This document shows positions 1,562-62,865 of a stretch of 64,000 nucleotides of DNA, one piece after another (position 1 is the first letter of the stretch; every line of letters starts with the position of its first letter). A model generated the notes under the pieces. That model worked only from the letters and a program-made list of their open reading frames with translations. It made no database searches and had not been told where the DNA came from. Origin of the DNA: Malacoraja senta (Eukaryota); the NCBI GenBank assembly GCA_038087875.1, contig CM075978.1, positions 175,026,001 to 175,090,000 of the forward strand. Reading direction: 5' to 3'. The position numbers and the translations under genes were made by a program.

Positions 1562-1680
1562 CTACTTTGGCCATTGGGCACCAAACGTCTTTTTTTCGAA
1601 AGCGATCAATATTGGTCACACGATGCAACAAGCTATCCATAGCTTCGAAAGCACCGTGGATGCTGCACAGCGAATCCATC
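1562..1680 (-). CDS. Gene A candidate TM/last exon, activating type (Lys in TM), with in-frame TGA at 1618-1616
   Basis: CTGAC branch-like site and TTTAG acceptor; phase 1 matches the C1 donor; reads (G)WIRCAASTVLSKLWIACCIV*PILIAFEKKTFGAQWPK** and ends in TAG TAG. Confidence 0.55.
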
Positions 1681-1934
1681 CTAAATACCAGATGCGCAAG
1701 AACGTAAGTCAGAAGCTGATGTTTAATGCATTTCCTGAAGGAATGGCCGCGAGCGACATTAGACTTGTTGCTGGTCTCCCACAAAGGGCAGGATAAACAT
1801 TGCACGTGCCCACTTCTCCTGATACGTATTGTACTTAAATTTACTTAACACTCCAAATGGAACAACCAAGTCGGTTAAGGGCTTTATCTGCTCCAACTAC
1901 AATTTAGTACAATCGGAAATCCACGCAGTTAACT

Positions 1935-3840
1935 TTAGGGCTTAATTAGGAAAGGGAAAATAGATTATGAAAAAAACCTGGCAGGGAACATAAAAACTGA
2001 CTGCAAAAGCTTTCATAGATATGTGAAGAGAAAAAGATTAGTTAAAACAAATGTAGGTCCCTTGCAGTCAGAAACGGGTGAATTGATCATGGGGAACAAG
2101 GACATGGCAGACCATTTGAATAACTACTTTGGTTCTGTCTTCACTGACGAAGACATAAATAATCTGCCGGAAATAGCAGGGGACCGGGGGTCAAATGAGA
2201 TGGGGGAACTAAGTGAAATCCAGGTTAGTCGGGGTGTTAGGTAAATTGAATGGATGAAAGGCCGATAAAACCCTGGACCAGATAGGCTGCATCCCAGAGT
2301 GCTTAAGGAAGTAGCTCCAGAAATAGTGGATGCATTAGTGATAATTTTTCAAAAGTCTTTAGATTTTGGAGTAGTTCTTGAGGATTGGAGGGTAGCTAAT
2401 GTAACCCCACTTTTTAAAAAGGGAGGGAGAGAGAAAACGGGGAATTACAGACCAGTTAGTCTAACATCGGTAGTGGGGAAAATGCCTGAGTACGTTATTA
2501 AAGATGGGATAGCAGCACATTTGGAAAATGGTGAAATCATTGGACAAAGTCAGCATGGATTTATGAAAGGTAAATCATGTCTGACGAATCTTATAGAATT
2601 TTTCAAGGATGTAACTACTAGAGCGGATAAGGGAGACCCAGTGGATGTGTTATATCTGGACTTTCAGAAGGCTTTCGACAAGGTCCCACATAAGAGATTA
2701 GTATGCAAACTTAAAGCACACGTTATTGGGGGTTCCGTATTGATGTGGATAGAGAATTGGCTGGCAGACAGGAAGCAAAGAGTAGGAGTAAACGGGTGCA
2801 TTTCAGAATGGCAGGCAAGGGAACCACAAGGCTCAGGGCTGGGACCCCAGCTATTTACAATATATATTAATGATTTGGACGAGGGAATTGAATGCAACAT
2901 CTCCAAGTTTGCGGATGACACGAAGCTGGGGGGGGGGGGGCAGTGTTAGCTGTGAGGAGGATGCTAGGAAGCTGCAAGGTGACTTGGATAGGTTGGGTGA
3001 GTGGGCAGGTGCAGTATAATGTGGATATATGTGAGGTTATCCACTTTGGTGGCAAGAACAGGAAAGTAGACTGTTATCTGAATGGTAGCCGATTAGAAAA
3101 AGGGGAGATGCAACGAGACCTGGGTGTCATGGTACACCAGTCATTGAAAGTAGGCATGCAGGTGCAGCAGGCAGTGAAGAAAGCGAATGGTATGTTAGCA
3201 TTCATAACAAAAGGATTTGAGTATAGGAGCAGGGAGGTTCTACTGCAGTTGTACAGGGCCTCGGTGAGACCACACCTGGAGTATTGCGTACAGTATTGGT
3301 CTCCTAATCTGAGGAAAGACATTCTTGCCATAGAGGGAGTACAGAGAAGGTTCGCCAGACTGATTCCTGGGATGGTAAGACTTTCATATGAAGAAAGACT
3401 GGATAGACTCGGCTTGTACTCGCTAGAATTTAGAAGATTGAGGGGGGATCTTATAGAAACTTACAAAATTCTTCAGGGGGTGGACAGGCTAAATGCAGGA
3501 AGATTGTTCCTGATGTTGGGGAAGTCCAGGACAAGGGGTCACAGTTTAAGGATAAGGGGTGAGTCTTTTAGGTCCGAGATGAGAATTTTTTTTCACACAG
3601 AGAGTGGTGAATCTGTGGAATTCTCTGCCACAGAAAGTAGTTGAGGCCAGTTCATTGTCTATATTTAAGAGGGAGTTCGATGTGGCCCTTGTGGCTAAAG
3701 GAATCAGGGGGTATGGGGAGAAGGCAGGTACAGGATACTGAGTTGGATGATCAGCCATGATCATATTGAATGGCGGTGCAGGTTCGAAGGGTCGAATGGC
3801 CTACTTTCTATTTTCTATGTTTCTATGTTTCTATGTTTAA
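1935..3840 (+). mobile_element. CR1 LINE, 5'-truncated, frameshifted RT
   Basis: ORFs 2299-2949 and 2943-3644 with [13 protein letters not shown] and SKFADDTKL motifs; (TTTCTATG)n tail at ~3805-3840. Confidence 0.95.
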
Positions 3841-3983
3841 CAATAGAATTAAGGCAGTAAGCAAGATAGAATTACAATACTTTTGCAACTTAGCAATCAT
3901 CCTCTCCATCGAAGCCACTTTCCTTTCCAAACACGACTGTCTGAATCCGCTACAATCGAACCTTCTAAAGTTTTCTACGTTAC

Positions 3984-4289
3984 CTGTTTTGAAATCCGGA
4001 ACATCATACGCTGCAGTCAATGGAGTAGGAAGAGTGAGGTGTGCCACTTGGCAAATATAGACCGACCCGCCCTGGTGTGTCCTTGTTTCCTTTAAATGAC
4101 TGGAAACTTCATATAATCCATTCATAGTCAGTTTTACCGTTGTATGTATGTCCACGAAAATCTCAATGCCATTTCGGTACCAAGTAAGGTTAAGTGACTC
4201 CGGGTAAAATTCATCCGCTTTACATAAGAGATTCAATGTGGTGGAGTTTTGATCAGGCAGTTTGGAGATTCTGAGCTGAGCTGGTGGAA
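3984..4289 (-). CDS. Gene A exon: Ig C1-set domain (SIRP/B7-H6-like)
   Basis: tttgcag acceptor, AG|GTAAC donor, 306 bp, phase 1-1; LLCKADEFYPESLNLTWYRNG...YICQVAHLTL. Confidence 0.92.
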
Positions 4290-4455
4290 CTGCAAATGTA
4301 AAGCAGAAAATGTATTTGTGATCCGAAAAACAACTACACGACATAACTGTTTTGTACAATACTGGTCGACGACCTCATAATTACACAGTTATGGGAACGT
4401 TCAGGATTAGCATATTGTCGGCTGTTTTTTTCGGATATTAACAACATAAATCGTA

Positions 4456-5608
4456 GGTGGACAAAAATGTTGGAGAAACTTAACGGGTGAGGCAGCATCT
4501 GTGAAGGTGACGTTTCGGGTCGAGACCCTTCTTCAGACTGATGTGGGGGTGGGAAGAAGAAAGGAAGAGGCGGATACAGAGGCTGTGGGAGAGCTGGGAA
4601 GGGGATAAAGCAAGGAATACCTGGAATTGGAGAAGTCAACTTTCATACCAATGGGGTGTAAACTACCCAAACAAAATATGAGATGCTTCTCCTCCAATTT
4701 GCGGTGGGACTCACTCTGGCCATGGAGGAGGCCCAGACAGAAAGGTCGGATTCTGAATGGGAGGGGCAGTTGCAGTGCTGATCAGGTTGGTTAATGTGAA
4801 CTGAGTGGAGGTGGAGGGCGAAGCGATCGCCAAACCTGCGATTGGCCTCACCGATGTAAAGTAGTTGACACCTGGAACAGCGGATGCAATAGATGAAGTT
4901 GGAGGAGGTGCAGGCGAACCTCTACCTCACCTGGAAAGACTGCTTTGGTCCTTGGATGGAGTTGGGGGGGGGAAGAGGTAAAGCGACAAGTGTAGCGTTT
5001 CCTGCATTTGCAAGGGAGAGTTCCAGGGGAGGGGGTGGGAAGGGACGAATTGACCAGGGCATTACGGAGGGAGCGGTCGCTGCAGAAAGCCAAAAGGGGA
5101 GAAGATGGGAAGAAGTGGCCAGTGGTGGGATCCCATTGGAGGTGGTGAAAAGGTCATAGGATAATCTGTTGTACGTGATGGTTGGTAGGGTGGAAGGTGA
5201 GGACAAGGAGGACTCTCTCTGTGTTATGCGTGGGGGGGGGGGTGGGAGTGAGAGCGGAGCTGCGGGATATGGAGGAGACCCTGGTGAGAGCCTCATCTAT
5301 AGTCGAAGACGGGAACCCACGTTTCATAAAGAATGAGGACATCTCCGATGCCCTGGTTTGGAACACCTCATCCTGGGTGCAGATGCGGCGTAGACGGAGG
5401 AATTGGGAGTAGGAGAGTCCTTACAGAAAGCAGGGCGTGAAGAAGTGTAGTCCAGATAACCATGGGAGTCAGTGGGTTTGTAGCAGATGTCGGTCCGTTG
5501 CCTGCGATGGAGATAATGAGGTCTAGAAACGGTAGGGAGATGTCGGAAATTGTCCAGGTGAATTTGAGTGCCGTATGGAAGTTGGTGGTGAAACGGATGC
5601 AGTCGTCA
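4456..5608 (-). mobile_element. Penelope-like element fragment (end of RT, GIY-YIG endonuclease, terminal pLTR-like repeat)
   Basis: Minus strand reads IYCIRCSRCQLLYIGEA at ~4840-4900; element absent at the paralogous site ~63950. Confidence 0.85.
4506..4539 (-). ncRNA. Minimal hammerhead-ribozyme-like motif at the Penelope 3' end
   Basis: CTGAAGA-A-GGGTC(TC)GACCC-GAAACGTC-AC; core resembles CUGANGA...GAAA...UH. Confidence 0.55.
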
Positions 5609-6480
5609 TCAGCCGTGCAATCTGATTCTGTACACGTCCTTTAAAAATAAAAGCCTTAATGAGAAACTTGACAGCAAGCATCTGAGAAAAATGAAAAATT
5701 TTAATCGTGCCCATTTTTTCAAAGAGTGTGAATTGTTGAATTTTATCAAAAAATGGTCAGTTTATCTTTAACTAACTCGCAACTTTACGGATTTGCTCTG
5801 TTTTTCAAATCTCAGACTGAGCACCATATATTACTTAGTTTTCTTGAAGTAAGAACAAATTAATTGGTAAATTTGAAAAAACACATAGGAATATCAGGTT
5901 TAGCCATTTATGTTTACTCGGGAGAGTGGGGAAGACGTTAAATACCGCTCCGGCAATTTCATAACGCGTTGGATATAAAAAAAAAGATCCAGCTAGGGTA
6001 GAAGGCCAGCAGGGCGGGTCCATAATGAGGGGGAATGTTGGAGACGGGAGAAGTGACCGTAACAGGGCGACGGTTGATGCCGCACCGGCAGTTGGAAATA
6101 AAATGGTCCAAATAAATGCTTCCCAACTGTGCCGGTCTATTGCATTCAAAATTTTCTCCTGCCCCTCCTCTCTTCCAGCTTTATACCTCCCACCCAGTGC
6201 AGATATTAGATAGCATTAATCAGCCTCGGAAAGTACTGCTGAAGATAGTAACTGTGTTGGAATCTGCGTTTCGGCGAATTTGGAGCAACGTCCGCATATT
6301 AGCAGCAAACAAACCAACCAATTAAACAGTTGTCCTAAGATCTTAAGACACAATATTACAAAGCACATGGGTACTTCGAATGGAAAACCTGGTCACATTG
6401 CTTTCCAGAATTATAGAATTGAACAAAAATAGAATAATATCACCATATTGCAGCACATTTGCTTTTACTGTCACACATAC

Positions 6481-6801
6481 CGAAGACTTTGATTCTGGAG
6501 CCAGATCCATTAACAATTTCACTTCCCTGGATTCCCACTCCGCAGTAATAGACTCCAGCATCATCTGCACGGATATTCAATATATGCAAGGAGGCTCCAC
6601 CTTGTTTAAAACGAACAAATATCTTCCTACTGTCAGAGGCTGTTTGCAGAATGTTCTGTTCGCCAAGTTTCCACCAATAAAATTCCACAGGTGGACTATT
6701 TTGCGATAGTCCAATAATGCAATAGAGAGTGATATTTGAATATAAGATCACGTGTTTGCTCAAAGGAGATTGAACGACTTGGTAGTGAGCATCAACGGCA
6801 A
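6481..6801 (-). CDS. Gene A exon: Ig V-set domain with J-like G strand (NGSGSRIKVF)
   Basis: ctgctacag acceptor, G|GTATGT donor, 321 bp, phase 1-1; ITLYC, FYWWK, DAGVYYC. Confidence 0.93.
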
Positions 6802-6969
6802 CTGTAGCAGAAGAAAATCAAAAATTATCCCATAACAGACGAGGACAGACACAATTAATCACAATTTTAAAGGATGCGTGAATGTGGATGTGCGTTCGAT
6901 ATACGGGTGCTGATCACAGAGGGTGTAGGTCAGTAAGAGGATGAAAACAAAAGAACAATCGAGTAATAC

Positions 6970-7024
6970 CTGCATTTATAATCAAGAGCGACGATAACAA
7001 CAGAACCACATCCCGAAACGGCAT
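6970..7024 (-). CDS. Gene A signal-peptide exon MPFRDVVLLLSSLLIINA
   Basis: ATG at 7024, hydrophobic core, phase-1 donor G|GTATT matching the V exon; conserved at 62322-62376. Confidence 0.82.
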
Positions 7025-9029
7025 ACTGAACTATGAAAATCATGTCCTAGGAAGTCCGAAATTCACTCAGGAGTTGCTGAAAGCAGCATGTAAGTAAAGT
7101 ATGATCTGGACAAAGAGAAATAGAGTTAACTTTTCTGTTCGAAAGACTTGGTCAAATGGAACATGTTGCACAATGCATTACCATGTCTCTGCTGTGAAAG
7201 AAAGGTTACGCGATTTGACGTGGGCTGAAGGAAATGACGTCCGATACGAAATTACCCAATTGCAGCTGTTCAGAAATGAGCTTCGGGATAAATTCTGGAA
7301 ACAACCTGTCGGTAGTGAATGTCATGTTCCGTGATGCAAACACATATTTGCCATCCATCCAGACGAATCTTGTCTTTGCTGAGTTTACCAATGAACTTCA
7401 TGCTAGTAGCTGCAGGTTTATATCAGAACAGAAAATTAAAAGTCTTCCACATATGTAGAAACTGAAAGAAGTCGGACATCCGAAAATACTAATAACCAGA
7501 TAGAAAATGACGTAAATGCGAAAAGGAAAGCTTTAAATATTTCTGTCGGCCATTAATGATTTGGATTGTGCCACCAACGTGTCACAAGACGTATTTAGTA
7601 TATAAGATAGATCCATCTTGGGACACTACCAACCCTTCTCCAAAGTACTATGTCCTATTCTTGACACATTAGTGGTAACATTAAAGGAACTATTAGCAAA
7701 ACAAACGGAAATGCCGAAAATATATACAGTAGCTGGTTATAGAACCGTCCTATCAGAGAATCGCAGAATCGTACAACAGTGCAACAAGCCTTGGTGTAGC
7801 TGCGCCAGCTACAACAACTGTGAATCATGTCTTCGCTAAACCCAATTGTTTGCGAGTCCGGCATCACTCTCTATTTTTCCTTTCTGTATACCTGTCGAAA
7901 TTTCTTCTGGACGTTGTAATTGTAATTGTGTTTGCCTTTCCGTCATGTTTGAAATAAACGTGCCTCTCCTTCTCTCCCATCCATTACATATTAAATGTTC
8001 CTATGTGTTGTAATTACCATCCAGTGACTGCCACATGTTCGTCTACGAATACGCTATTCCCAAATATGCCCCATCATTTTAACCTTAAACACAAGCGCGT
8101 CGGTCGCTTCTTCGTTGTTGCTAAAGCTGCACCACAAGTCCCCTTTTGATGTAACATTTGACATTTGGTGTTCAGAAGGGTGCCGCGATATTTGCTAAAC
8201 GGTCCTCGATTCTATGCCTGGTCCTGCCGACATACAGGACGAACATCGGATGCAGTTGACGAGTTTAGAAGATGTGCACGTTGCACTTTACTCTAGCACA
8301 ATGTGTTTAAAAAAATATATAAAGCAGCATTTGCTTCTTGCCATGGCCGATTCGGCGGAAACGGAACCAGATAACGTTTTACGTCCCACAACTTTCATTG
8401 GACTAGGAAAGAGTGTTTCTATCGATGGCGGATAAATTGGAGGACTAGGGAAAGGGAAACAACTCTGAGTAAACCCGTCTTTGAGGTTGCGGTTAGCATC
8501 AGTTATGCGTCTTTGTCTATGAAGCATGTTGCTAATAATGAAGCTCTGAGACGTATCCAGCAGGCTGTGGCATACCAAAATGGAATGAAAAGAGAGGTAC
8601 TGTGATGAGAGGGAGAAATTGGCATTTATGATACACACGGAAATAGTCTCAATTACTTAAGTCGGAGAGGTCTGCAATAAGCCTAGATGATTGAGCGTTC
8701 TTATAACAGTTTCATTTGGATTTGGATGGTTAAACAGAATAGTCAGTGGGTGAGGGTCGCAACCGGATGCTCAAGGTCTCTCTGAAAAGTCATCAAACAA
8801 TCTAGTTTCTTTTCTCCAATGCAGAGGGGAACGATTTGTGAACACCGAATTTTAATGTCAAACCGGAGGAAGTACAAAAAAATCGCTGCTTAACATGGAA
8901 AAAATATTTCCGTCTCTGCATGTTGGGAAAATTAATTGTTCCTCCTATGGTATAAATGCTATAAAACAGATCTATTTAGGTGAATGTGATTGAGCAGACC
9001 TTGGATTCACCAAGAAGGTAATCATTTCA

Positions 9030-11330
9030 ATAGACAATAGAGAATAGGTGCAGGAGAAGGCCATTCGGCTCTTCGAGCCAGCACCGCCGTTCAATGTGAT
9101 CATGGCTGATCATCCCCAATCAGTACCCCGTTCCTGCAATCTCCACATATCCCCTGACTCCGCTATCTTTAAAGGGTACTATCTAGCTCTCTCTTTAAAG
9201 CATCCAGAGAACCTGCCATCTGAGCCAGAGAATTCCACAGACTCACAACTCTCTGTGAGAAAAAGTGTTTCCTCGTCTCCGTTCTAAATGGCTTACCCCT
9301 TATTCTTAGACTGTGGCCCCATGGTTCTGGACTCCCCCAACATCTGGAACATGTTTCCTACCTCTAGCGTGTCCAACCCCTGAACAATCGTATATGTTTC
9401 AATAAGATCCCCTCTCATCCTAAACTCCCGAGTGTACAAGCCCAGCCGCTCCATTCTCTCAGCATATGACAGTCCCGCCACCCGGTATTTAACCTAGTAA
9501 ACCTACGCTGCACTCCCTCAATAGCAAGAATGTCCTTCCTAAAATTAGGGGACCAAAACTGCACACAATACTCCAGGTGTGGTCTCACTAGGGTTCTGTA
9601 CGACTGCAGAAGGACCTCTTTGCTCCTATACTCGACTCCTCTTGTTATAAAGGCCAACATGCCATTCGCCTTCTTCGCTGCCTGCTGTACCTGCATGCTT
9701 ACTTCCATAGACTGATGAACAAGGACCCCCAGATCCCGTCGTACTTCCCCTTTTCCCAACTTGGCGCCATTTAGATAGTAATCTGCCTTCCTGTATTTGA
9801 TACCAAAGTGGATAACCTCACATTTATCCACATTAAACTTCATCTGCCATGCATCTGCCCACTCCCCCAACCTGTCCAGGTCACTCTGCATTCTCATGGC
9901 ATCCTCCTCACAGTTCACACTGCCACCCATCTTTGTATCATCTGCAAATTTGCTAATGTTACTTTGCATCCTTTCATCCAAATCATTGATGCATAATGTA
10001 AATAGCTGCGGTCCCAGCACCGAGTCTTGCGGTACCACACTAGTCACTGCCTGCCATTCTGAAAGGGACCCGATAATCCCTACACTTTGTTTCCTGTCTG
10101 CCAACCAATTTTCTATCCATGTCAGCACTCTACCCCAAAACTATGTGCCCTAATTTTGCCCACTAATCTCCAATGTGGGACCTTATCAAATGCTTTCTGA
10201 AAGTCCAGGTACACTACATCCATTGGCTCTCCCTTGTCCATTTTCCTAGTTACATCTTCAAAAAATTCCAGAAGATTAGTCAAGCCTGATTTCCCCTTCG
10301 TAAATCCATGCTGACTCGGACCTATCCTGTTACTGCTATCCAAAATGTGCGGCTATTTCATCTTTTATAATTGATTCCAGCATCTTCCCCACTGGTCAGG
10401 CTAACTGGTCTATAGTTCCCTGTTTTCTCTCTCCCGCCTTTCTTAAAAAGTGGGATAATATTAGCTATCCTCCAATCCACAGGAACTGATCCCGAGTATA
10501 GAACATTGGAAAATTATCACCAATGCATCCACGATTTCTAGAGCCACTTCCTTACGTATCCTGGGATGCTGACCACCAGGCCCTAGGGATTGATCAGCCT
10601 TCAGTCCAATCAGTCTACCCAACACCATATCCCGCCTAAAGTGGATTTCCTTCATTTCCTCCGTCACCCCAGATCCTCTGGCCACTACTGTATCAGGAAG
10701 ATTATTTGTGACCTCCTTAGTGAAGACGGATCCAAAGTACCTGTTCAACTCATCTGCCATTTCCTTGTTCCCCATAATAAATTCAAATTTTTCGGTCTTC
10801 AAGGGTACAACTTTGGTCTTAACTAATTTTTTTCTCTTCACATACCGAAAAAATGTTTTGCTATCCTCCTTTATATTCTTGTCTAGCTTACCTTCGTACC
10901 TCATCTTTACTCCCCGTATTGTCTTTTTAGTTATATTCTGTTGCTGTTTAAACATTACCCAATCCTCTTTCTTCCCGCTCATCTTTGCTACCATGTACTT
11001 CTTCTATTTTATTTTTATACTGTCCCTGACGTCCCTTATCAGCCACGGTCGCCCCTTACTCCCCTTGGAATCTTTCTTCCTCCTAGGAATGAACTGATCC
11101 TGCACCTTCTGTATTATTCGTAGAAATACCTGCCATTTTGTTCCACTGTCATCCCTGCTAGTGTATCTTTTCAGTCAACTTTGGCCAGCTCCTCCTTCAT
11201 GGCCCCATAGTCCCCTTTATTCAACTGTAACACTGACACCTTCGATCTCCCCCTCTCCCTCTCCAATTGTTGATTAAAGCTGACCATGTTATGGTCACCT
11301 CCTCCTAATGGCTCATTACCATCGAGGTCC
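9030..11330 (-). mobile_element. CR1 LINE, 5'-truncated
   Basis: RT ORFs 9415-10128, 10122-10343, 10461-10994; (TATTGTC)-type tail at ~9030; absent in the paralogous copy. Confidence 0.95.
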
Positions 11331-12519
11331 TTTATTCAAAACATTGAAACGAAGAGGAAGATATCTCCGATTTAAGAGGATTTTGCCAGGACCTTGGATT
11401 CACGAAGAAGGTAATCATTGCAAAACACTGAAACGTAGAGGAATACATCCCTAATTTACGAGGATGTTGCTATGACTAGAGGGTGTAGGCTATAGGGAGA
11501 GGTTGAGCAGGTTTCATGGGCGGAAAGGGGAGACGACGACACAGGGGAACATGTTCCCTCCATGTTTTGAGAGATGGGGACAATCCCCCCCATGTTTTGT
11601 GAAACATGTCTTTTGTAATCAGTTCAATCCGATCGCGAGCTGAGGAGTCGCGGCCGCATGCATGGCCAGCTGGCTCAGACTCTGAAAATAATTGAATATT
11701 ATCCTTTGGTAAAGATAAACGCTCATCCATTCCTCATACAATACACAAAATAGGTTGCAGCAAAAGCAAAGCCGCATTGGAATTGTACATCTTTATAAGG
11801 CTCTCTGGTTTAATGAGTACTGCAGAACGATTGGGGTCGTTTATCACTTCACTGTGAGATAAAAACGACGTGTTAACTGTCATATCTCACTGTTATTTCG
11901 ATGCGTCACCAATCAATACGTCGATATGCATTCCTCAGTAAATATAATTGTGTTTTGACCATCTTTGGTTTTGACCTTCAAGTATTGATGACGCGTTTCT
12001 TTGAATAAAATTCACGCGAGAATATCTTAAAACAGTCCGATGCGGGTATAATTACCATTTGAACTTTGGTGGCAGACGAAGTATGCTGGAGGAACACAGC
12101 GGGTGAGGCAGCATCTATGTAGAGAAGGAATAGGCAACGTTTCGGGTCTCGACTCTTCTTCAGACCATTTGTGAACTTTGAATGTATTGGTGGATGGGAA
12201 AGATTTAAACGGGTATCGGAGGGTCATCCGGCTGCCGAGCTGGTGTGCAGGTATAGCCCCTTATTCACCCACGTTATTTAGTCATTTTTACCCATCATTT
12301 AGGGATGTTATATGAATTTAAACAAATTAAGTATGTTTATGTTTATTTTTGTTAGTTTATCAAAAGTTTATTTATGTATGCTTTTGTTAGTTTGTGAGAA
12401 GTTTATACATGTTGTCCCCCCCATCTCTCCGTCTCTCTCCTCCAAGTTTAGTACTTCTGTTTGCCTTTATTTGCTTCAGTTTTATTTAGTGTTATTCATC
12501 ACGTTGCAGCTTTTGAAAG

Positions 12520-15500
12520 TTTTTTTTTTTTTTTAATTTGTATTTATTAGAAGTACATTAAATTACAACCAATTACATTGGTACTCATCACGTAAATCTT
12601 ATTACAATTAATGTACTCCGTCATTTTTTACACTGATAAAAAGGAAAGGTTGAGATTAAGAAAAAAGAGAAAGTGAAGGAAAATAGTGAAGGTGTAAAAA
12701 CGTGACAACAAGAAAGAACAGAGACCCTGTAGAAAAGAAATTAAAAAGAAAGGATTAAGAGATAGACCCTAAAGAAGAAAAAAAGAGAAAGGGGAAAAAA
12801 GAGAAAAACAAATACTTTGTTATAAGCATCACGCAAATGGGATATACCAACTCTCCAGCTTTCATCCCCCTTTACCTGACCTCAGGTTTTTTTAAAGTAC
12901 TTTTGCACCCTTTACTTGTAATAATTCTATAAATGCAGACCACGTCAGGTGGAAGTGATCTGGTTTACCTGCCAGGAGGAGTCTTATCTCTTCTAGGTGT
13001 AATGTTTCAAACATGTTTGAAATCCACATGTTTATAGTTGGTATTGGAGCGTTTTTCCAGAATTTTAGGATTAACTTTTTTCCAGTTATTAACCCGTAAT
13101 CTATTAATTTCTTTTGAAACACATTTAGTTCAGGACTTTCTTCCGTTGTTGCGAAGATAATCCATTCTGCTTTTGGTATCAGTTTTATTTTAAATAACTT
13201 TGTAAAGATTTCAAAAATTTCAATCCAAAATTTTTGAATTTTTGTACAAAAAACAAATGAGTGCGCTATGGTAGCTTCTTGAGATTAACATGTATCACAA
13301 ATGGATGATACATTGGGGAAAAATTTATTAATTTTAGTTTTTGAATAATATAATATATGTAAAATTTTAAATTGTATTAAGTGTGTCTTACATTAATCGA
13401 ACATTTATGCACGTTTAATAAATGTTCATTCCACCTTTCCTTTGAGATCTTAATAGCTAATTCTTGTTCCCAGTCTCTTCTAATACCTTCCGTAGATGGT
13501 ATTTCTACATTTAAGATACTATTATACAAATATGATATTAAGTTTGCTGATTCAGCTTTTATCTGCATTGCTTCATCCAATACATCTGCTGGGATATTAT
13601 AATGATCTTTTGTATATTTTTTCAAATTGTCACATATTTGAAACTATTTAAAATATTGATTATTTCCCAGTTTATATATTATTTGTAATTGTTGGAATGA
13701 TAGTAATTTTCCAGTTTCATACAAGTCACCGAACGTTTTAATTCCTAGTCTATCCCATTGTGTAAAATATTTGTCTGTAATAGAGGGGTTAAACGAAGGG
13801 TTATTAACTATTGGAGATAAAAGCGATAGATTTCTTAATTTTAAATTTTGTTTTATTTGTTTCCAAGTTCTGATTGTACTATGTATAATTGGGTTGTTGT
13901 TATAATTTATGTTATTCAGTTTCATTGGTGAGAGGAAGATCGCTCCAATATTACCAGAGGAACAGTCCCCTCTCTCCATTACAATCCAGTCCACTTGCTG
14001 GGCAGAGTTGTCCATCAGTTGGATCATATTTTTAATATTTACTGACCAATAATAATACATGAAGTTAGGGAGTGCTAAGCCCCCTAATACTTTAGCTTTG
14101 TTCAAGTGTGTTCTTTGTATTCTATGGGATTTATAATCTCATATAAAATTAATAATGTCTGACTCCAATTTTTAAAAAAACTTCTTTGGTAGGTATATAG
14201 GAATCGATTGAAATAGGTATAAAATTTGTGGTAAGAAGATCATTTTTATTGCATTTATTCCGCCTATTAAAGACATCGGAAGCGTTTTCCAAAATTTAAT
14301 TAATGTATTTAATTTATTAAGTAGAGGATCATAATTTGCTTTGAACATGCCTTGATATATTCTGGTGATTTCAATACCCAAGTATTTAAATTTTTCTGTA
14401 GCTATTTTAAAAGGGAATTTTAAAAGATGTGTTGAGTCTTTCGGTTTTATTGACATAATTTCACTTTTATTCCAATTTATTCTGTATCCAGAAAAGAATC
14501 CAAAGTCCTCAATTAGATTTAGTATGTTTGGTATAGTAATTTGAGGTTTTGTAATGTACAATAATATATCATCCGCGTATAAAGATATTTCATTATTTGA
14601 GTATTTAGTATTATACCCATGGATATCAGGATGTGTTCTAATTTTTTCTGCTAATGGTTCAATTATGAGAGCAAACAACTGTGGTGATAATGAGCATCCT
14701 TGCCTGTTTCCCCTTGATAGTTGAAATTTCGAGGATAATATGTTATTAGTTAGTATTCTAGCTGTAGGTTTATTATATAATAATTTAATCCATAAAATAA
14801 AATTCTCTCCCAGTTGGAATTTTTGTGATACTTTATCCATATAATTCCATTCTACTTGGTCAAATGCTTTTTCAGCGTCCAGCGAAATAATTGATAATTC
14901 TTGTTCTTCAATTTTGTGTGAGTGCATTATATTGAGTAGACGTCTCATATTATTAGATGAATATCTCTTAGGGATAAACCCCGTCTGATCTGGGTTTATT
15001 AATTTACTAATATATTTAATTAATCTTCTAGCTAATTTCGCTAATATTTTTTGATCTGTATTTAACAATGCTATAGCTCTATATGAACCCGGTTCTTCTA
15101 TATATTTGTTGTTTTTTAAGTATTAGTGTGGTCGTTGATTCAGCTAATGTATCAGGTAATATTTGTTTATTAAAAGCATATTGATACATTTTTTGTAACT
15201 GTGGTATAATTTTGTCATAAAAGTTTTATAAAATTCATTAGTATATCCATCAGGACCTGGAGTTTTTCCATTCTTTAATGAATTTATTGTGTCTTCTAAT
15301 TCCTTGATTGAAACTTGTGCACCCAATTCCTCTTGTTCCTTCAACTCTAGCTTTGGAAGATTACAATTATCCATGAACTCTGTAATTTTATTGGAGTCCG
15401 TTGTTGTTTTAGATGTGTACAAATTCTCATAAAATTGCGCAAATCTTTTATTAATATCCTTCGGTATGGTTAGTAATTCCCCTCTATCTGATTTAATCTT

Positions 15501-17960
15501 TTGGATCGTATGTTCTTTTTCTCGTTTTTTTGGCTGACGAGCTAAAATTTATGCGGTTGATCCCCAAATTCAAAGTGTTCCTGTTTTGTAATTTGTAAAA
15601 GTCTTATAAGTTTGGCTGATAATAGTTTATTTAATTTAAATTTCAAAATTATTATTTTATTATGTTTATCTATTGATGGATCTTTAGCATTATCTATATC
15701 CATTTGTCTAATAAGTTCTTCTAACTGTCTTTGTTCATTCTTATTCTTTTTATTTTGAAAAGCTTGGTATGAGATTATAACACCTCTAATAAATGCTTTA
15801 AAAGATTCCCATAGTAAAGTAGGCGATATATCTGGAGTGTCATTTATTTCAAATAATACGTCCATTTGTTCTTTTAAATATATACTCGCTTGCGGATCTT
15901 TTAGGATTTGAGAATTGAATCTCCAAAACGATTTATTCTTAGACATTCCTTCCAGTTTTAAAAAGAAAGTTAGTGGTGAATGGTCTGAATTCGAATTTGT
16001 ATGGTATGCTGGGTTCACAGTGTGAGGGATTAATTTTGTATCCACCAGGAAATAATCTATACGTGAGTATGTTTTGTGTACCATTAAATAAAACGAGTAT
16101 TCCCTGCCAATCGGATTAGCAATTCTCCAAACATCTGTTACATTGGTATTATTTATATAAGTATTTAAAAGTTCACTAGTTTTAGATTTCGTATTCCCTC
16201 TCTGTGTTTGGCTTGATTTGTCTAAATACGGATCTAAAACACAGTTAAAGTCTCCTCCTATTATAACATTTTTATAATTAAACTCTGCGATTATGTTCAG
16301 AATTTTATTGAAAAAATGAGGATTGTCAAAGTTAGGCGCGTATATATTTACCAAGGTAATTGGTGTATCATGAATTTCTCCGGTAACTTCAATGTCTGTT
16401 ATGGTATTCTTTGCTTTGAATGGTATACCATTTCTAATAATGATTGACGTACCTCTAGAATTCGAAGTATATAAAGAATGATATATTTGACCTATCCATT
16501 TCGCCCTCAACCTAGCTTGATCCTGGGATTTTAGATGAGTTTCTTGTAAGAAAATGATGTCAGAATTGTACAGTTTCAGCTGAGCTAATATCTTACCCCT
16601 TTTAATAGGTTCATTAATACCTCTTATATTCCAACTGCAGAATGAGACTCCCCCTAGGTTCATTTGTTTAACATCATGCATTTTGAATAATTATAATACC
16701 TTTAAATCTTGTGGTGCATCCATGTCTCAGGTCTTTGGGTATTGGGGGAACCTTTGCATTACTAAGTTTTGTTGGCATATCCCTTTTACGCTTATCACTA
16801 AACACAAAACACAAACATGTGACTTTATGTGGTAATAATAATAATTTTTAAAAAATTGAAAAAGTGAAAATACAATGTCTAAAATGGTCGACACTGTAAC
16901 AAGTGGCCCACCTGTAGGTGGGAGAAAACCTTGTTTCGACTTCTATTGTTGATGTTAAACAAATAACTCCGCACCCTTGGTTAATCATAACATAATAGGA
17001 CGGGGCCTCACAATCAGATATATAATACAAATTTACCCTATATATTTCATTATAACCTATCTTATATATATCGCAATTTTATCTACTAATTATTAAACGA
17101 ATGATTTTACCTTCAATAATAATCAACTGTTGGTTTGAAGGGGTTAATGAAACGTGCTCCTGGACTTGAGCCAGGTGCTCGTTTCTCATCCCCTCCTCCC
17201 AGTTATAGATAAGGTTTAAATTTAGTAAAAATTTATGTTAGTTATATTAGTTCGTTATTTTTTTTGTTAGCGTCCGTTACTATTCTAGTTTAATATTGAT
17301 AACTTGTTAAATTGTTAAGTTGTTAACAGGATAAATTCTTACAATTGGATTTAATATTATAATCTATTAAACAATTAATGCTTCTGGTATAGTCTATTCT
17401 CTTCGGTTCGGCTGTTTACTTCGTTTGGAACACAAAATGTCCTTGAGTTAAAATTCCACAGATAACCAGTCTCGCCATCCTAAACAAAACACTACATGAA
17501 ATGGTTCTGAGCTGCCGATCCTCCATTAACTGTGGAATTCCAATAAAAAAGTTTGTTCATACCATCTATGTCGCTAATTTTCAACGATGCTCTGGGCATA
17601 TTTGTACGCATCCTCCGGGTTTACAAATGATCTTTCACGTCCATTATAAGAGATGCGCATTTTAGCTGGATAAAAGGCACCGTATCTAACATCTTGCATC
17701 CCCCTTAAAAGTTATTTTGCCTTTCTGAATTGATTTCTCTTTTGCACAATTCCATACGGATAGTCCCTGAATAATTTGATAATGTCGTTATCAAGCCTCA
17801 GTTGCACTCCATATTTCATTTTACTCATCACCTCTTCCAGTTCTGAAATGTCTCGACATTTCACAATAATCTGCCGTGGGTGGTCTTGTCTAGCTTGAGA
17901 TCCCGGTTTAAATCTCGGTACATGGTGTGCCACTTCAATATTCGGTTCTTTGGAGAGATT
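12520..17960 (-). mobile_element. L1-clade LINE, 5'-truncated within ORF1, disrupted ORF2
   Basis: ORF1 C-terminus (PRQIIVK, YPAKMRISYNG); APE domain 15542-16681 (SWNIRG, LQETH, GGDFN); RT 14172-15068 (LDAEKAFD, RQGCSLSP, YADD); AATAAA plus polyA at ~12520-12547; candidate TSD GCAGCTTTTGAAAG/GCTGCTTTTGAAAG. Confidence 0.93.
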
Positions 17961-19417: not shown

Positions 19418-20178
19418 CATGTGTGGAAATCCGGTGGGGCAGGGGGACACATCCCCTCCATGTTTTGAGGGGTGGGGGATAACCCCCCCCCCTCCCATGT
19501 TTTGTAATCCGGATTTTGAAATTCGGTGAAAACAAATCTATTAAAAATCTCCGCATTCCGCGAGACAGTGGAGAAGGAACTGATGATCAAGGGCGCCGAT
19601 TGGACGAGTGAGACGTCGGTCAGCAAGTAGTGGGTGGGGCGGGGGGTGGGGCGGTGGGAGGCGGGACATGATGATTTAGTGCGATGATTGGAGGAGGGAG
19701 GTATCGGTCAGAGGCGGAAGTAGGGGGTGGGACTGAGGATAGAGCGCGGTGTTTGGAGAAGGGAGACGTCCTGGTAGAGCAAAGATCATGGAGGGGAGTT
19801 CCAATCGGTCCATTCGCGTGGCCTTTCATCGCCTGGCGAGACGCGGCCGCGTCAAATTGTTGCGTCGAGGCGAAAGATGCTCCCGATGTTGAAGCTCCCG
19901 CCGGGGGATGGAAGGCCCCGCGGCCGGTTTTAAGCCGCGCTGGGCGATGAAAGGTCCCGCGAACGGGCCGATTGAAGCCACACGATTCGGGCGGACGAAG
20001 CTGCTGGAGTTCCGAGTCGGTCACCAACCAGGTCAACTCCCGATGTTACCGTCCACAGGGCCCACGGCCGAAGCCTCCGAATTCTCGCGCGTGCGTGTGC
20101 GTGTGCGCGTGCGTATGCGCATGCGGGCACCAAGAAATTGTGCCCCCCCCCATGTTTTGACAGCGATTTCCGCCCCTG
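19418..20178. mobile_element. hAT-like MITE
   Basis: TIR CATGTGTGGAAAT/ATTTCCGCCCCTG; 8-bp TSD GGATGAAG/TGACGAAG; empty site GGGCGAAG in the paralog at ~56610 (minus strand). Confidence 0.8.
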
Positions 20179-20375
20179 TGACGAAGGGCTTGATTTCATT
20201 CTGTATTTTGCAATCAAATCAAACCTGTGTGGAAAGGTTCATCATGGGAGAAAATGCAATCATTGGAGGTGGGATCCATTGAATGATGCCTCGAGATGGA
20301 ATCGCATATCAGAGCGGCAATTAAGAGCATGGTTTCCTGCAAAGCCGAAACGAATATTTATCCTCACTGTATAAT

Positions 20376-20990
20376 CAGGGCCGGCCTTAAGCCGATTGGA
20401 CCGATTGCTCCCAATTGGGCCCCGTGAGTAAGGGGGCCCCGCGCCAGAGTAATCTACTCTCGGCTCGGGTAGATTTACCCCGGGTGGAGGGGGGAGAGAG
20501 GGGTGGAGAGAGGGGCGGAGAGAGAGAGTAGAGGGGTGGAGAGGGACGAAAGGGGTAGACGCGGAGGGGGTGTGAGGGGGAATGGAGAAGGGGGAGAGGG
20601 GGAGGTGGGTCGTTCGCTCACGGCAGCGCTCCCGCCCCTCCAGTCGCCGTGCTTCACGCAAACAACCCCGGCTGCGCCCCCCTCTCTCTCGGGGGAGACG
20701 CGTGAACAATACACGGAGGGCAGGGCGCGGGTTGGAGCAACGTTTACAAACATCGGCCTCAGCTCACACCCGTCCGCCCGGACCCCGGCATCCGCTCCCG
20801 CCGCCGGGCCTCTCCCTCCATTCTCTTCTTCCCTCCCGCCTTCCTCTCTCTTTTCCCTTCTCTCATTCGCTCCATCCCTTCTTTCTCTCCTTCTCTCCCT
20901 CCTTTCTCTACCTCCCTCCCGTCCTTCCTCCCTTCTCTCCCTCCCTCCCTCCCTCCCTCCCTTCTGTCCTTCCCTCCCACACACACAAAA
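20376..20990. mobile_element. hAT-like left end (CAGGGCCGGCCTTAAG) followed by GA- and CT-rich low-complexity sequence
   Basis: Typical CAGGG hAT terminus; right end not found; coincides with the end of duplication homology. Confidence 0.45.
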
Positions 20991-21029
20991 CGCACAGTCT
21001 ACACATTGTGTTTGTTACTTATACCTTCT

Positions 21030-21530: not shown

Positions 21531-21544
21531 TACTTAACAAAAGG

Positions 21545-25069: not shown

Positions 25070-25070
25070 A

Positions 25071-36887: not shown

Positions 36888-36919
36888 GTGAGGGGCGTTT
36901 GAATTTCAAATGTGAAACA

Positions 36920-43510: not shown

Positions 43511-43893
43511 ATGAGAACTAACTTGTTGGCTCTTGCATTAATTGGGGACTGTTAGTGGGGAGAAGACGCCTGCAATGATTCACTCCTGACCAGCGTCAGT
43601 AACATTAACATCTCCTTCAAAATTTGGTGAACAGAATATATCCAAATTAATGTATTATGTTCTACAATTCCTGTTTCCTAACGGTCAATATCCCACAAGG
43701 TTCACTTAAGATCTATTTATTTCACTCGTAATCGCGCCATAAAGCGAAATTGCTGGCTCTGCCGCCTTCCACGCGGTGCTGGTGAAATCCATTGAGTGAA
43801 CATTTGAAATATCTTGCTTTGTTTTCCGCAAAGTCTACTTTGAAATAACTTAATTAAATATAAACGTTTGGTAATCGGTTTAACCTCCCACAG

Positions 43894-43995
43894 CTGTCGA
43901 GGGTTTATCTGCTTCTCTAATCGCTGGAAGTATCGGAGGTGCAGTGTTAATTTTAATGTTCATCGTTATCATCGTGATGGCAATTATATTTAGAG
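43894..43995 (+). CDS. Gene B transmembrane exon (uncharged)
   Basis: cccacag acceptor, AG|GTATG donor; AVEGLSASLIAGSIGGAVLILMFIVIIVMAIIFR. Confidence 0.88.
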
Positions 43996-44570: not shown

Positions 44571-44732
44571 AGCGTGGCACAAACAACGTGGTTTAAGCCT
44601 TCACACATATGTAGTGAAGCCGTATACAGTGAAACTCTATCGTGCAATTATCACATGATATTACGTTCTTGGCGTGCAAAAACCCCCACCATGTCGCACG
44701 GCCTTTTATCACTATTTTATTTTTCCGAGCAG

Positions 44733-44776
44733 GTGCAAAGAAGCATACAGTAAATACAAATCGGACACAAAGTTGG
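44733..44776 (+). CDS. Gene B cytoplasmic exon 1 (GAKKHTVNTNRTQSW)
   Basis: tttttccgagcag acceptor, TGG|GTAAG donor; phase 1-0 bridges the TM exon and the next phase-0 exon. Confidence 0.72.
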
Positions 44777-46689: not shown

Positions 46690-46800
46690 GAAGAATGTGA
46701 GAACGTTGGCCGCAATCCGATGTACGCATATTTGGATCTTGTCCGCTGCAAAGAATATGAGAAACCTGAAGAGCATGTGGAGAGCCCTGTGTATGCAAAG
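46690..46800 (+). CDS. Gene B cytoplasmic exon 2 (EECENVGRNPMYAYLDLVRCKEYEKPEEHVESPVYAK)
   Basis: tttccag acceptor, AAG|GTAAAG donor, phase 0-0; two YxxL/I motifs. Confidence 0.8.
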
Positions 46801-46912: not shown

Positions 46913-47044
46913 ATCGCAATTGTGGCTGCTGCTGATAATGAACTGGCATACGCTCCCTTGAACACGTCAAGCTCGACAAAGAATTTGAAACGGCAACATA
47001 AAGAAATAAGTGTAATATATAGCGGGGTGAAAAATAACAACTAA
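46913..47044 (+). CDS. Gene B last exon with two canonical ITIMs (LAYAPL, VIYSGV)
   Basis: tgcacag acceptor; IAIVAAADNELAYAPLNTSSSTKNLKRQHKEISVIYSGVKNNN*. Confidence 0.85.
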   Translation: MAIVAAADNELAYAPLNTSSSTKNLKRQHKEISVIYSGVKNNN

Positions 47045-52400: not shown

Positions 52401-52429
52401 TAACTACTACCTCCGATGTCCCTTAGACT

Positions 52430-60190: not shown

Positions 60191-62321
60191 AATCGAGGAG
60201 AGTTTAGCAAATATCACGGCACCCTTCTGAATAGCAAATGCCAGATGTTACATCAAAAAGGGACATGTGATGCAGTTTTAGCAGCAACGAAGAAACGGCC
60301 GATGCACGTGTGTTTAAGATTAAAATGATGGGGCATATTTGAGAATAGGGTATTCGTAGACGACCATAAGGCAGTCACTGGATGATAATTACAAAACATA
60401 GGGATATTTAATATGTAATGGATGGGAGAGAAGCACGTTTCTTTCAAACATGATGGAAAGAGGCAAATACAATTACAACATCCAGAAGACATTTCGACAG
60501 GTATACAGAAAGGAAAAATAGAAAGCGACATGGGATTTGCAGGCAACTGGGTTTACCGAAGACATGACATAGCTGCTGGCACAGCTACACCAAGGCTTGT
60601 TGCACTGTGGTACGATTCAGCGATTGTCTGATACGACTATAACCATCTATATGTTTCGGGATTTTTTTTTGCTAACAGTTCAAACAGTATAGGAAGGAAC
60701 TGCATATGCTGTTTTAAACCACATATAGACACAAAAAGCTGTAATAACTCAGCTTCTTCAGTTTGAAGCAGGGTCTCGACCCGAAACGTCACACATTCCT
60801 TCTATCCAGAGATGCTGCTTGTTCCGCTGAGTTACTCCAGCTTTTTGTGTCTATCTTAGGAGTTAGCTGTACATGGTGGCAGCTCCATGCATGGGGTGTG
60901 AAAGAGATGATTGGTCCAGGAGTCTGACAACAGTGGGGAAGAAGCTGTTCTTAAGCCAGGCTTTTAAATCCCCATACCTTTTCCCGGAAGATAGAACAGA
61001 AAAAAGGGATTTGCCAGGGTTGCAGGCATCCTTAACAATACTTCCAGACTTCCTGATGCAACGCACTGTTACATGGACTGGATGGAGGGAAGTGAAGAGA
61101 CTCTGATGGACTGAGCTGTGTTCATCATTCTCTATATAGGAAGGATCTGCAGATGCTGGTTTAAACTGAAGATAGACAAAAAATGTGGAGTAACTCAGCG
61201 GGTCAGACAGCATCTCTGGTGAACAGGAATATGTGACTTTTCGGGTCGAGACCCTTCTTCAGACTGCTGGTCAGTCAGTCAAAAGCAGAGCAGTTGCCCT
61301 ACCAGGCTGAGACTCCTGTCAGAATACCTTCTATAGCATAACTGTAGACGTTTGAGAGAATTCTCATCAACGTGCCGATTCTACTCACAGTTCAAAGGCC
61401 AATTAACCTACAAACCTGTACATTTGTGGGGTGTGGTAGAAAACCAGAGCACCCGGAGGAAACCCACGCACAGGGAATGTGTGCAAACGCCACACAGGTC
61501 TGAAGAAGGGTCTCAACCAGAACCGTCACCCATTCCTTCTATCCTGAAATGCTGCTTGACCCGCTGTTACTCCAGCATTTTGTGTCTATCTTCGGTGCAG
61601 ACCAGCATTTGCAGTTCCTTCCTATACACAGACAGCATCCATGGTTTGAATTTTAATTTTACCACGAATATGTCAAGAATGGGACATAGTACATTGGAGA
61701 AGCGTTGGTGCAGTTGGTCCCAAGAGGGATATAATTTATATATTAAATACGTATTGGGACGTTGGTGGCACATTCCAAACAATTAATGGCCGATAGAAAT
61801 ATTTAAAGCTTTCATTTTCGCATTTACCTCATTTTCTATCTGGTTACTAGTATTTTCGGATGTCCGACTCCTTTTAGTTTCTACATATGTGGAAGACTTT
61901 TAACTTTCTGTTCTGACATAAAACTGCAGCCATTAGCATGAAGATCATTGGTAAACTCAGCAAAGACAAGATTCGTCTGGATGGATGGCAAATATGTGTT
62001 TGAATCGTGGAACATGCCATGCACTTCCGACAGGGTGATTCCAGAATTTTACAGAAGCTCATTTCTGAACAGCTGCAATTGTGTCATTTCGTATCGGACG
62101 TGATTTCCTTCAGTCCACGTCAGACCCTGTACCCTTTTTTTCACAGCAGAGATATGGTAATGCATTGTGCAACATGTTCCATTTGACCAAGTCTTTCGAA
62201 CAGAAAGGTTAACTCTATTTCTCTTTACCAAGATCATACTTTACTTACATGTAGAGTTCAGCAATTACTGAGTGCATTTCAGACTTCCAATACTTAGGAC
62301 GTATGATTTTTATAGTTCAGT

Positions 62322-62376
62322 ATGCTTTTTCGCGATGTGGTTCTGTTATTATCGTCGCTCTTGTTTATAAACGCAG
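62322..62376 (+). CDS. Gene C signal-peptide exon MLFRDVVLLLSSLLFINA
   Basis: ATG at 62322, phase-1 donor G|GTATT; paralog of 6970-7024. Confidence 0.82.
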
Positions 62377-62544
62377 GTATTTTTCGATTTTTCTTTTGTT
62401 TTCATCTTCTTACTGACCTACACCCTCTGTGATCTGCACCCGTATATCGAACGCACATCCATTTTCATGCATCTTTTAAAAGTGCGATTAATTGTGTCTG
62501 TCCTCGTCTGTTATGGGATAATTTTTGATTTTCTTCTGCTACAG

Positions 62545-62865
62545 TTGCCGTTGATGCTCACTACCAAATCGATCAATCTCCGACGATCAAACACGCGATC
62601 TTACATTCAAATATCACTCTCTATTGCATTATTGGACTATCGCACAATAGTCAACCTGTGGAATTTTATTGGTGGAAACTTGGCGAACAGAACGTTCTGC
62701 AAACAGCTTCTGACAGTAGGAAGATATTTCTTCGTTTTAAACAAGGTGGAGCTTCCTTGCATATATTGAATATCCATGCAGATGATGCTGGAGTCTATTA
62801 CTGCGGAGTAGGAATCCAGGGAAGCGAGATTGTGAATGGATCTAGCTCCAGAATTAAAGTCTTCG
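62545..62865 (+). CDS. Gene C exon: Ig V-set domain (paralog of gene A V)
   Basis: ctgctacag acceptor, G|GTATGT donor, 321 bp open frame; J-like motif altered to NGSSSRIKVF. Confidence 0.93.

Follow-up and report, generated by a model that had tools for sequence, protein, structure and literature searches.

The question raised by the stretch of DNA analyzed here, 64,000 nucleotides of contig CM075978.1 of the skate Malacoraja senta (hereafter, the window), is whether the immunoglobulin (Ig)-type receptor genes that it carries, called A, B and C below, form a cluster of paired activating and inhibitory receptors. Of the living lineages whose immunity is built on Ig, T-cell receptors and a major histocompatibility complex (MHC), the cartilaginous fish are the oldest. 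An earlier reading, made from the DNA letters alone (the sequence-only reading), had taken the window for such a paired cluster, with gene A as its activating and gene B as its inhibitory member. The results obtained pointed, with a probability of about 0.75, to another arrangement: gene B is of the inhibitory type, genes A and C are duplicates that belong to a different lineage, the membrane anchor of gene A is unverified, and the pairing exists at the level of the family and not within the window. The window would be part of a large cluster formed by a multigene family of chondrichthyans. The members of this family are predicted type I membrane receptors, in which a split leader is followed by a single germline-joined VJ domain, a single C1-set domain, a transmembrane (TM) segment and a variable tail.

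The Ig-type exons of the window were surveyed by motif scans and by tblastn with exon translations. Exactly three intact V exons, one degenerate V exon and two C1 exons were found, and tblastn of family sequences detected no further Ig exon in the window. The three intact V exons matched Pfam V-set/Ig_3 (E-values of 1e-8 to 3e-10), were in phase 1 at both entry and exit, and all carried the motifs WWK, DSRKIF and YYC and a J-like G strand containing GxG (NGSGSRIKVF and GEGTGEQLIVY), in agreement with what the sequence-only reading had described. The C1 exons of genes A and B, for which it had given a length of 306 bp, were of exactly this length, with AG/GT flanks and Pfam C1-set matches (E-values of 4e-12 and 4e-10). 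The phase-1 leader exons of genes A, B and C ended in INA, LNA and INA, respectively, plus one base, followed by a GT donor; the shared leader ends of the type xxNA that had been proposed were, hence, present in these three genes; for the pseudogene, a search by similarity and by the leader-end pattern found no leader. Two extra matches of that pattern (AAYGCNGGTR), at 47227 and 48265 on the minus strand, were discarded, since they had no ATG or hydrophobic leader and one of them lay in a repeat.

Gene B was reconstructed from seven exons:

39057-39084, plus strand: coding part of the leader exon, MYFLGILNA plus one base as it now stands
39373-39684, plus strand: VJ exon, 312 bp
40609-40914, plus strand: C1-set exon, 306 bp
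43894-43995, plus strand: TM exon, uncharged, ..LIAGSIGGAVLILMFIVIIVMAIIFR
44730-44776, plus strand: juxtamembrane exon, 47 bp, (A)GAKKHTVNTNRTQSW, preceded by a NAGNAG acceptor (44728-44732)
46690-46800, plus strand: cytoplasmic exon 1, PMYAYLDL ... PVYAK
46913-47044, plus strand: cytoplasmic exon 2, with the immunoreceptor tyrosine-based inhibitory motifs (ITIMs) LAYAPL and VIYSGV and the stop TAA at 47042-47044

The splicing of the gene models, which had been put forward as a check, gave for gene B a clean coding sequence of 1038 nt (345 amino acids), without internal stops and with AG/GT at all of the junctions. This model was colinear by tblastn, exon by exon, with the Heterodontus protein XP_067905931 in the V and C1 domains, the TM segment, the juxtamembrane peptide and both tail exons. 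The TM segment reached 17.6 bits against a hidden Markov model (HMM) of the family TM exons, a score that none of 995 shuffled sequences attained. In the tail, the two canonical ITIMs and two SIRP-alpha-like YxxL/I sites, in the motifs PMYAYLDL and PVYAKI, were arranged as two modules, PMYAYLDL..PVYAKI and LAYAPL..VIYSGV, with a spacing of about 23 residues. The uncharged TM segment and the ITIMs that had been attributed to gene B were present in this predicted coding sequence. Gene B would act as an inhibitory receptor, in which the VJ domain would bind a ligand and the tail tyrosines, once phosphorylated, would recruit SHP-type phosphatases, as in SIRP-alpha. The acceptor of the juxtamembrane exon was a tandem one (ccgAG/cAG/gtg at 44728-44732, with exon starts at 44730 and 44733), which would include or omit one Ala.

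The start of gene B was altered. When it was aligned with the leader of the Chiloscyllium orthologue (locus L001, 9990-10054), the ancestral start codon, located nine codons upstream of the present ATG (39030-39032), was ACG in the skate versus ATG in the shark. The next in-frame ATG has A at -3 and leaves a leader of nine residues. The loss of the ancestral ATG puts the expression of gene B in doubt: translation may be weak, or the inactivation of the gene may be recent; its leader is consistent either with near-cognate initiation or with a very young pseudogene.

The remaining intact V exons belonged to genes A and C, located near the two ends of the window:

6970-7024, minus strand: coding part of the gene A leader, ATG at 7024-7022, 18 codons plus one base, ending in ..IINA, donor GT
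6481-6801, minus strand: VJ exon of gene A, 321 bp, phase 1 at both ends, with WWK, DSRKIF, YYC and NGSGSRIKVF
3984-4289, minus strand: C1-set exon of gene A, 306 bp, AG/GT
62322-62376, plus strand: coding part of the gene C leader, ..LFINA
62545-62865, plus strand: VJ exon of gene C, 93.4% nucleotide identity to the V exon of gene A
5670-9000, no strand assigned: gene A arm of an inverted duplication, partner 63918-58586, 80-90% identity
58586-63918, no strand assigned: gene C arm of the same duplication, partner 5670-9000, 80-90% identity

The V exons of the two genes differed at 21 of 318 sites, with a ratio of nonsynonymous to synonymous differences per site (pN/pS) of 0.45, and the genes were 90% identical. 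The part of gene C that follows its V exon lies beyond the window, no ITIM-like motif was found downstream of gene A within the window, and neither of the two genes has a verified tail. These two genes are young duplicates in inverted orientation, and their lineage is distinct from that of gene B.

To place these genes, an exhaustive HMM search built on the three V exons was carried out, which returned 1456 hits. The higher-ranked hits were unrelated multi-Ig proteins whose scores were summed over many domains, and each of the inspected single-domain hits to the full V was a V-C1 protein from a shark, a ray or the chimaera Callorhinchus, with a few variants lacking C1 or the TM segment. With two word-indexed searches, 39 and 32 relatives were obtained, every one of them chondrichthyan, and neither these nor the HMM search retrieved a bony-vertebrate orthologue. 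As judged from sequence, the family is confined to chondrichthyans within the reach of the searches run. A single C1 domain was present in the homologues inspected, except for a few models that resembled gene fusions. Gene models of the family exist in at least 14 species under inconsistent NCBI names (SIRP-alpha-like, SIRP-beta-1-like, tapasin-related-like, Ig lambda-like, NCR3LG1-like, CD276 homolog and MHC-like), and many members were automatically named [quoted passage not shown] by the NCBI pipelines. No paper describing the family came up when the literature was searched for SIRP-like receptors of cartilaginous fish. The suggestion that it could be uncharacterized holds only in so far as no such paper was found.

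Three classes of tails were distinguished. Class I combined an uncharged TM segment with one to three modules of the form xLTYAxLDL ... TVYAQTK (tail consensus LTYAxLDL..TVYAQTK). Class II consisted of a short anchor, R-F-[IV]-L-x-F-L-V-I-L-I-L-T-I-I-I-x-[DE]-H, kept from chimaera to sharks, and class III of the remaining short tails, whose TM segment contained R, K or NxxR. The short-tail members classified had Arg-type TM segments, the one exception being a protein of Mobula whose Lys lies close to the beginning of the segment. The class II motif, in the extended form R-F-x-L-x-F-L-V-I-L-I-L-T-I-I-I-x-D/E-H-F-K-R, was seen from Callorhinchus to sharks in the proteins P0061, P0168, P0169, P0171-P0174, P0026, P0068 and P0204, and we take it to resemble the R...E-D/H pattern of GPVI, LILRA and NKp46, which are coupled to FcR-gamma. 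Additionally, among the annotated isoforms P0098, P0136, P0090 / P0177, P0185, some lacked C1 and passed from V directly to the TM segment and the ITIM tail, and others lacked the TM segment and passed from V-C1 to the tail; this suggests exon-skipping variants, and the forms without a TM segment would presumably be soluble.

An ectodomain tree was built by maximum likelihood, with branch support from the Shimodaira-Hasegawa-like approximate likelihood ratio test (SH-aLRT). Gene B grouped with the class I protein of Heterodontus (XP_067905931) and with a class II short-tail protein of Chiloscyllium (100% SH-aLRT), and genes A and C formed a group (99% support) with three class I (ITIM-tailed) proteins and a single shark protein of class II. 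Class II tails occurred in at least four ectodomain lineages and required at least four changes on the tree. Furthermore, the Chiloscyllium plagiosum proteins P0200 and P0204 were 80% identical over a 206-residue alignment and matched closely up to the TM segment, which was of the uncharged class I type in one versus class II in the other. The family, in which the same ectodomain lineages carry either ITIM tails or short tails with an Arg-type TM segment, appears to behave as paired receptors do. In the bamboo shark Chiloscyllium punctatum (BEZZ01001040.1, L001 1-6162, minus strand), a second V-set plus C1-set gene of the family was observed upstream of the gene B-lineage short-tail gene, on the opposite strand and divergent from it, so that the clustered layout of mixed orientation is shared with sharks.

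Within the window the situation was different. Paired receptors are defined by highly conserved ectodomains, opposite signaling and location in one small cluster, the activating member having a short tail and an Arg or Lys in the TM segment for binding to an ITAM adaptor (PMC3533184). Genes A and B were 36% identical in the V domain and 40% in C1 and fell into separate, well-supported lineages; hence, A and B are not a pair. The conserved ectodomains that characterize such receptors were found in P0200/P0204 of Chiloscyllium and not in the window. The idea of a paired activating and inhibitory cluster stood, therefore, for the family, with its ITIM-tailed and short charged-TM forms, and fell for the window itself. 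As for the activating side, members with R or K in the TM segment exist in the family, and gene A offered only an exon with Lys at chance level and a class II-like segment with Asn and a LINE (long interspersed nuclear element). Both candidates for its anchor are described by the following features:

1562-1680, minus strand: activating TM exon proposed for gene A by the sequence-only reading, GWIRCAASTVLSKLWIACCIV, then TGA, then 17 more codons
3839-3983, minus strand: read-through open reading frame (ORF) after the C1 exon of gene A, in frame through the donor, with the connecting peptide GNVENFRRF... and the first half of a TM segment of the short-tail type, ..SILLTALILLL
1934-3838, plus strand: LINE in gene A, 5'-truncated and antisense to the gene, with reverse-transcriptase (RT) ORFs at 2299-3644 and a 3' tail of (CTATGTTT)n
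1897-1930, minus strand: flank past the LINE, inferred end of the exon before the insertion, in the same frame, ..TAWISDCTKL, stop TAG at 1899-1897

The exon at 1680-1562 had an AG acceptor (1682-1681) in the right phase (phase 1) and encoded a fairly hydrophobic stretch of 20 residues with Arg and Lys. An in-frame TGA followed after 21 codons, at once after the TM segment, so that the tail is absent unless the stop is read through. Against the HMM of the family TM exons this exon scored 0.9 bits, and 316 of 936 shuffled sequences did as well or better. A hydrophobic 20-mer behind a phase-1 AG acceptor occurs in the window about 0.36 times per kb per strand, and about one chance candidate is thus expected in the 4 kb after the C1 exon of gene A. 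The claim that gene A ends in a TM segment with Lys and a short tail was, accordingly, not supported.

The second candidate lay directly behind C1. The C1 frame of gene A stayed open for 49 codons past the donor and, as it stands, stops four codons into the LINE. The 3' junction of this insertion is exact and the 5' junction (1933/1934) was set by a GTT(AA) target-site duplication, the likeness to other copies being firm only from 1966. With the LINE removed, the frame encoded a hydrophobic segment of 19 residues followed by Asp, and the joined segment, when compared with a class II tail HMM, scored 3.8 bits, a value reached by two of the 795 scored shuffles. A word-indexed protein search with the C1 domain and the read-through ORF gave 24 candidates, none of them significant; hence, no annotated protein backs the read-through. 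The “G” that follows C1 was considered as a sign of read-through and rejected, since the spliced class I forms also begin their TM exon with G. The short-tail TM segment split by the LINE appeared to be the better of two weak candidates. The leader, V and C1 exons of gene A are intact, but no membrane anchor could be verified, and the gene is probably disabled; if a class II anchor did lie directly after C1 and was split by the LINE, gene A is most likely disabled or gives at most a truncated V-C1 product.

The V-C1 unit was then compared with known systems. The best matches of the family V-C1 profile in the PDB were Ig heavy chains (in which several C1 domains add up), UrIg2 (E-value of 1.7e-37), SIRP-alpha (2wng, 9e-35) and SIRP-gamma (4i2x, 3e-30), and C1 alone matched Ig, SIRP d3, MHC and UrIg2. 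The V exon and the V profile alone were of no use for choosing among SIRP, NKp30 and B7, because multi-Ig proteins and antibodies dominated their PDB matches. An AlphaFold model of the gene B-lineage ectodomain (predicted local distance difference test of 89) superposed in Foldseek on the B7 family, B7-H6, tapasin/TAPBPR, butyrophilins and SIRP-alpha; these were generic matches of V plus C two-domain proteins, and the search was discarded as a discriminator.

The family of the skate genes shares with SIRP a V domain at the N-terminus, which has a J-like G strand and precedes the C1-set domain(s), a profile match to the SIRP-alpha V-C1 unit (2wng) in one colinear stretch, and the existence of inhibitory members together with short-tail members with a charged TM segment, some of which NCBI names SIRP-alpha-like or SIRP-beta-1-like. 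The SIRP-alpha tail contains the motifs ITYADL, LTYADL and TEYASI (PMC5413580), and the two gene B modules of ITIM, about 23 residues and xYAxx resemble in sequence pattern ITYADL...TEYASI and LTYADL. Unlike SIRP, which is V-C1-C1, the chondrichthyan family has one C1; unlike SIRP-beta, with its mid-TM Lys, its short tails mostly have Arg at the outer edge of the TM segment and D/E-H at the inner edge, or NxxR. Thus, of the features of the SIRP family, the V domain with its J-like strand and, in sequence only, the four-tyrosine tail pattern of two ITIM plus xEYAS(I/V) modules were found, and the two C1 domains were not; because of this last difference the family was filed as SIRP-like in its mode of action and not as a member of SIRP. 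The lineage-specific, SIRP-like family with a single C1 that had been proposed was, in this sense, supported by the purely chondrichthyan relatives and the colinear SIRP-alpha match.

Mammalian NKp30 is an activating receptor with Arg in its TM segment and no C1 domain; a single VJ domain that leads directly into stalk and TM segment is characteristic of NKp30/NCR3. It shares with the family a non-rearranging VJ-type V domain, whereas genes A and B have a C1-set exon, and NKp30 was not among the top PDB matches. B7-H6 (NCR3LG1) resembled the family in its V plus C ectodomain (predicted fold, template-modelling score (TM-score) of 0.72-0.73, 24-25% identity); in contrast to B7-H6 and B7, the chondrichthyan family has tails with ITIM modules, paired TM classes and a C domain of the C1-set. 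UrIg has three C domains and is secreted, and UrIg2 has nine or more C domains, up to eleven (PMC12227049). Both are, like the family described here, cartilaginous fish genes with a non-rearranging single-exon VJ, a split leader and then C1-type domains, and UrIg2 (PDB 9dmx) was among the best profile matches; the latter differs from their architecture in its single C1, its TM segment, its ITIM or short tails and its large number of genes. The LILR, KIR and PIR receptors also form birth-and-death clusters in which ITIM members stand beside short-tail members with Arg in the TM segment (LILRA, with such a tail, pairs with FcR-gamma; PMC3533184), and near-identical ectodomains with opposite tails occur as in the Chiloscyllium pair. 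Their ectodomains are, however, made of C2/I-type domains and not of V plus C1, and no near-identical pair with opposite tails was present in the window.

Several of the results above, taken together, weigh against the arrangement favored here. The class II reading of gene A is a weak score (3.8 bits), with Asn at the position of the family Arg, and in the only homologous locus read (L001 of C. punctatum, gene B lineage) the class II TM segment is a separate exon 4.2 kb after C1. With the family profile, the scores of Ig heavy chains and UrIg2 equal or exceed that of SIRP, the V domain alone has no special affinity to SIRP or NKp30, and the predicted V-C1 fold fits the B7 family and B7-H6 at least as well as SIRP-alpha. 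Gene B might still be translated from ACG or with a short leader, and every splice junction is a predicted one.

Could all of the copies be decaying, with gene B also a young pseudogene and the window mere birth-and-death debris? The change of the ancestral start of gene B from ATG to ACG, the LINE inserted in gene A, the degenerate V relic and the density of LINEs in the window would all be explained; but the coding sequence of gene B is otherwise intact over its 1038 nt, with all splice sites present, its downstream in-frame ATG has A at -3, and the pN/pS of 0.45 between the V exons of A and C is not about 1. This explanation was considered unlikely. The model of the sequence-only reading, with gene A as an intact activating receptor whose C1 is spliced to 1680-1562 and whose Lys-containing TM segment would couple to a DAP12-like adaptor and pair with gene B, was judged very unlikely. 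The exon does have its in-phase acceptor and the 20-residue stretch with Arg and Lys, it looks by eye like the TM segment of a Leucoraja short-tail protein (R near the start, CC near the end, the TGA standing at the Arg of that protein), and the window holds no ITIM exon for gene A; yet the TGA leaves it without a single cytoplasmic residue, a third of its shuffled versions (316 of 936) match the family TM exons as well, 4 kb should hold about one candidate of this kind by chance, and the ectodomains of A and B, 36-40% identical and of different lineages, lack the conservation that paired receptors need (PMC3533184).

The other alternatives concern the identity of the family. A shark NCR3 (NKp30) family was reportedly described by Kinlein et al. 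in 2021, and the skate genes could belong to it or be PRARP genes; the comparison was made by names, descriptions and PDB matches. The VJ domain is non-rearranging, and a putative NKp30-like F-G region in it, judged against the human sequence, served as a lead only. PRARP, cited as MHC-linked, is listed in PMC10751288 and PMC11599192 among genes of the Ig superfamily with joined VJ domains, and PMC12227049 cites the shark NCR3 genes MT914154-61. On the other hand, none of more than 60 NCBI models bears an NCR3-like name (they are named after SIRP, TAPBPL, Ig lambda, NCR3LG1, CD276 and MHC), human NKp30 is absent from the best 60 PDB matches of both the gene A V exon and the family V profile, and the mammalian protein is devoid of C1; the identification was regarded as rather unlikely. 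That the proteins are ligands of the B7/B7-H6 type, displayed to other cells instead of signaling, seemed highly improbable: the top TM-scores and identities in Foldseek include B7-H6 (0.72-0.73, 24-25%), PD-L1, ICOS-L and CD276, and some models are named NCR3LG1-like or CD276 homolog, but tails in which an ITIM module is repeated one to three times, or which are short and go with conserved polar residues in the TM segment, are hallmarks of signaling receptors, the C domain is C1-set by Pfam versus the C2-set typical of B7, and two-domain TM-scores hinge on the predicted interdomain angle. A more far-reaching proposal, held to be quite doubtful, gives the C1 end two fates: read-through of the donor would yield a short-tail “on” form (R...T...D/E-H), putatively adaptor-coupled, and splicing an “off” form with an uncharged TM segment and ITIMs, with the gene A anchor destroyed by the LINE and the family an ancient single-C1 relative of SIRP. 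The choice would be reminiscent of that between the secreted and membrane forms of Ig heavy chains.

Under the favored arrangement, an inhibitory gene B beside the A/C duplicates, the window mainly illustrates birth-and-death turnover: an inhibitory gene whose start codon was lost, a LINE-hit copy, a partial copy and a relic. Non-rearranging VJ-C1 genes of cartilaginous fish bear on the nature of the pre-RAG antigen-receptor unit, and a large SIRP-like family of one VJ and one C1, chondrichthyan so far, with ITIM tails and a short-tail anchor kept from chimaera to sharks, would add a system of innate paired receptors. A consistent name would become possible for dozens of genes now called SIRP-alpha-like, tapasin-related, Ig lambda-like, NCR3LG1-like, CD276 or MHC-like. 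If the proposal of two fates were true, the family would link paired innate receptors to the V-C1 unit of antigen receptors.

The relic and the remaining features of the window were also annotated:

36595-36858, plus strand: V relic of the gene B lineage, acceptor AG and both canonical Cys lost
36868-38185, minus strand: LINE copy beside the V relic, with RT ORFs
24870-25069, no strand assigned: assembly gap in intergenic repeat DNA, non-coding

The V relic, which corresponds to the one pseudogene announced by the sequence-only reading and has lost both cysteines, was 68.6% identical in nucleotides to the V exon of gene B over 153 bp and ends against the LINE. The assembly gap is separated by 17.8 kb from the leader of gene A and by 11.5 kb from the V relic, and it is crossed by no exon and no reading frame; the scaffold join affects only how gene A is linked and oriented with respect to genes B and C and the V relic. 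An ORF spanning the gap (24798-25106) is composed of X residues and was dismissed as meaningless.

The window is LINE-rich vertebrate DNA, with ORFs for reverse transcriptase and endonuclease throughout, and contains no flanking genes outside the Ig family. The longest copy of the LINE family found in gene A and beside the V relic was located at 26738-30488 (minus strand), with an RT ORF of 315 amino acids and upstream ORFs, and further copies of the family were seen at 9055-10994 and 36868-38185. A LINE of another family (13644-16681, minus strand), AT-rich (29-35% GC), had open ORFs for endonuclease (379 amino acids) and reverse transcriptase (298 amino acids) and was possibly active recently. 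Two GC-rich (49-54%), low-complexity stretches, 19600-24000 and 33050-33870, had long overlapping ORFs on both strands, rich in Pro/Arg/Ser/Gly and without any Pfam match, and are probably simple-repeat DNA rather than genes. Finally, two palindromic elements, 38316-38494 (179 bp, 84% self-complementary) and 39709-39855 (147 bp, 94%), were observed, one upstream of the leader exon of gene B and the other just 3' of its V exon. Related copies were present at 4454-4538, 12071-12166, 43415-43512, 60761-60857, 61170-61264 and 61496-61623, and these elements look like miniature inverted-repeat transposable elements.

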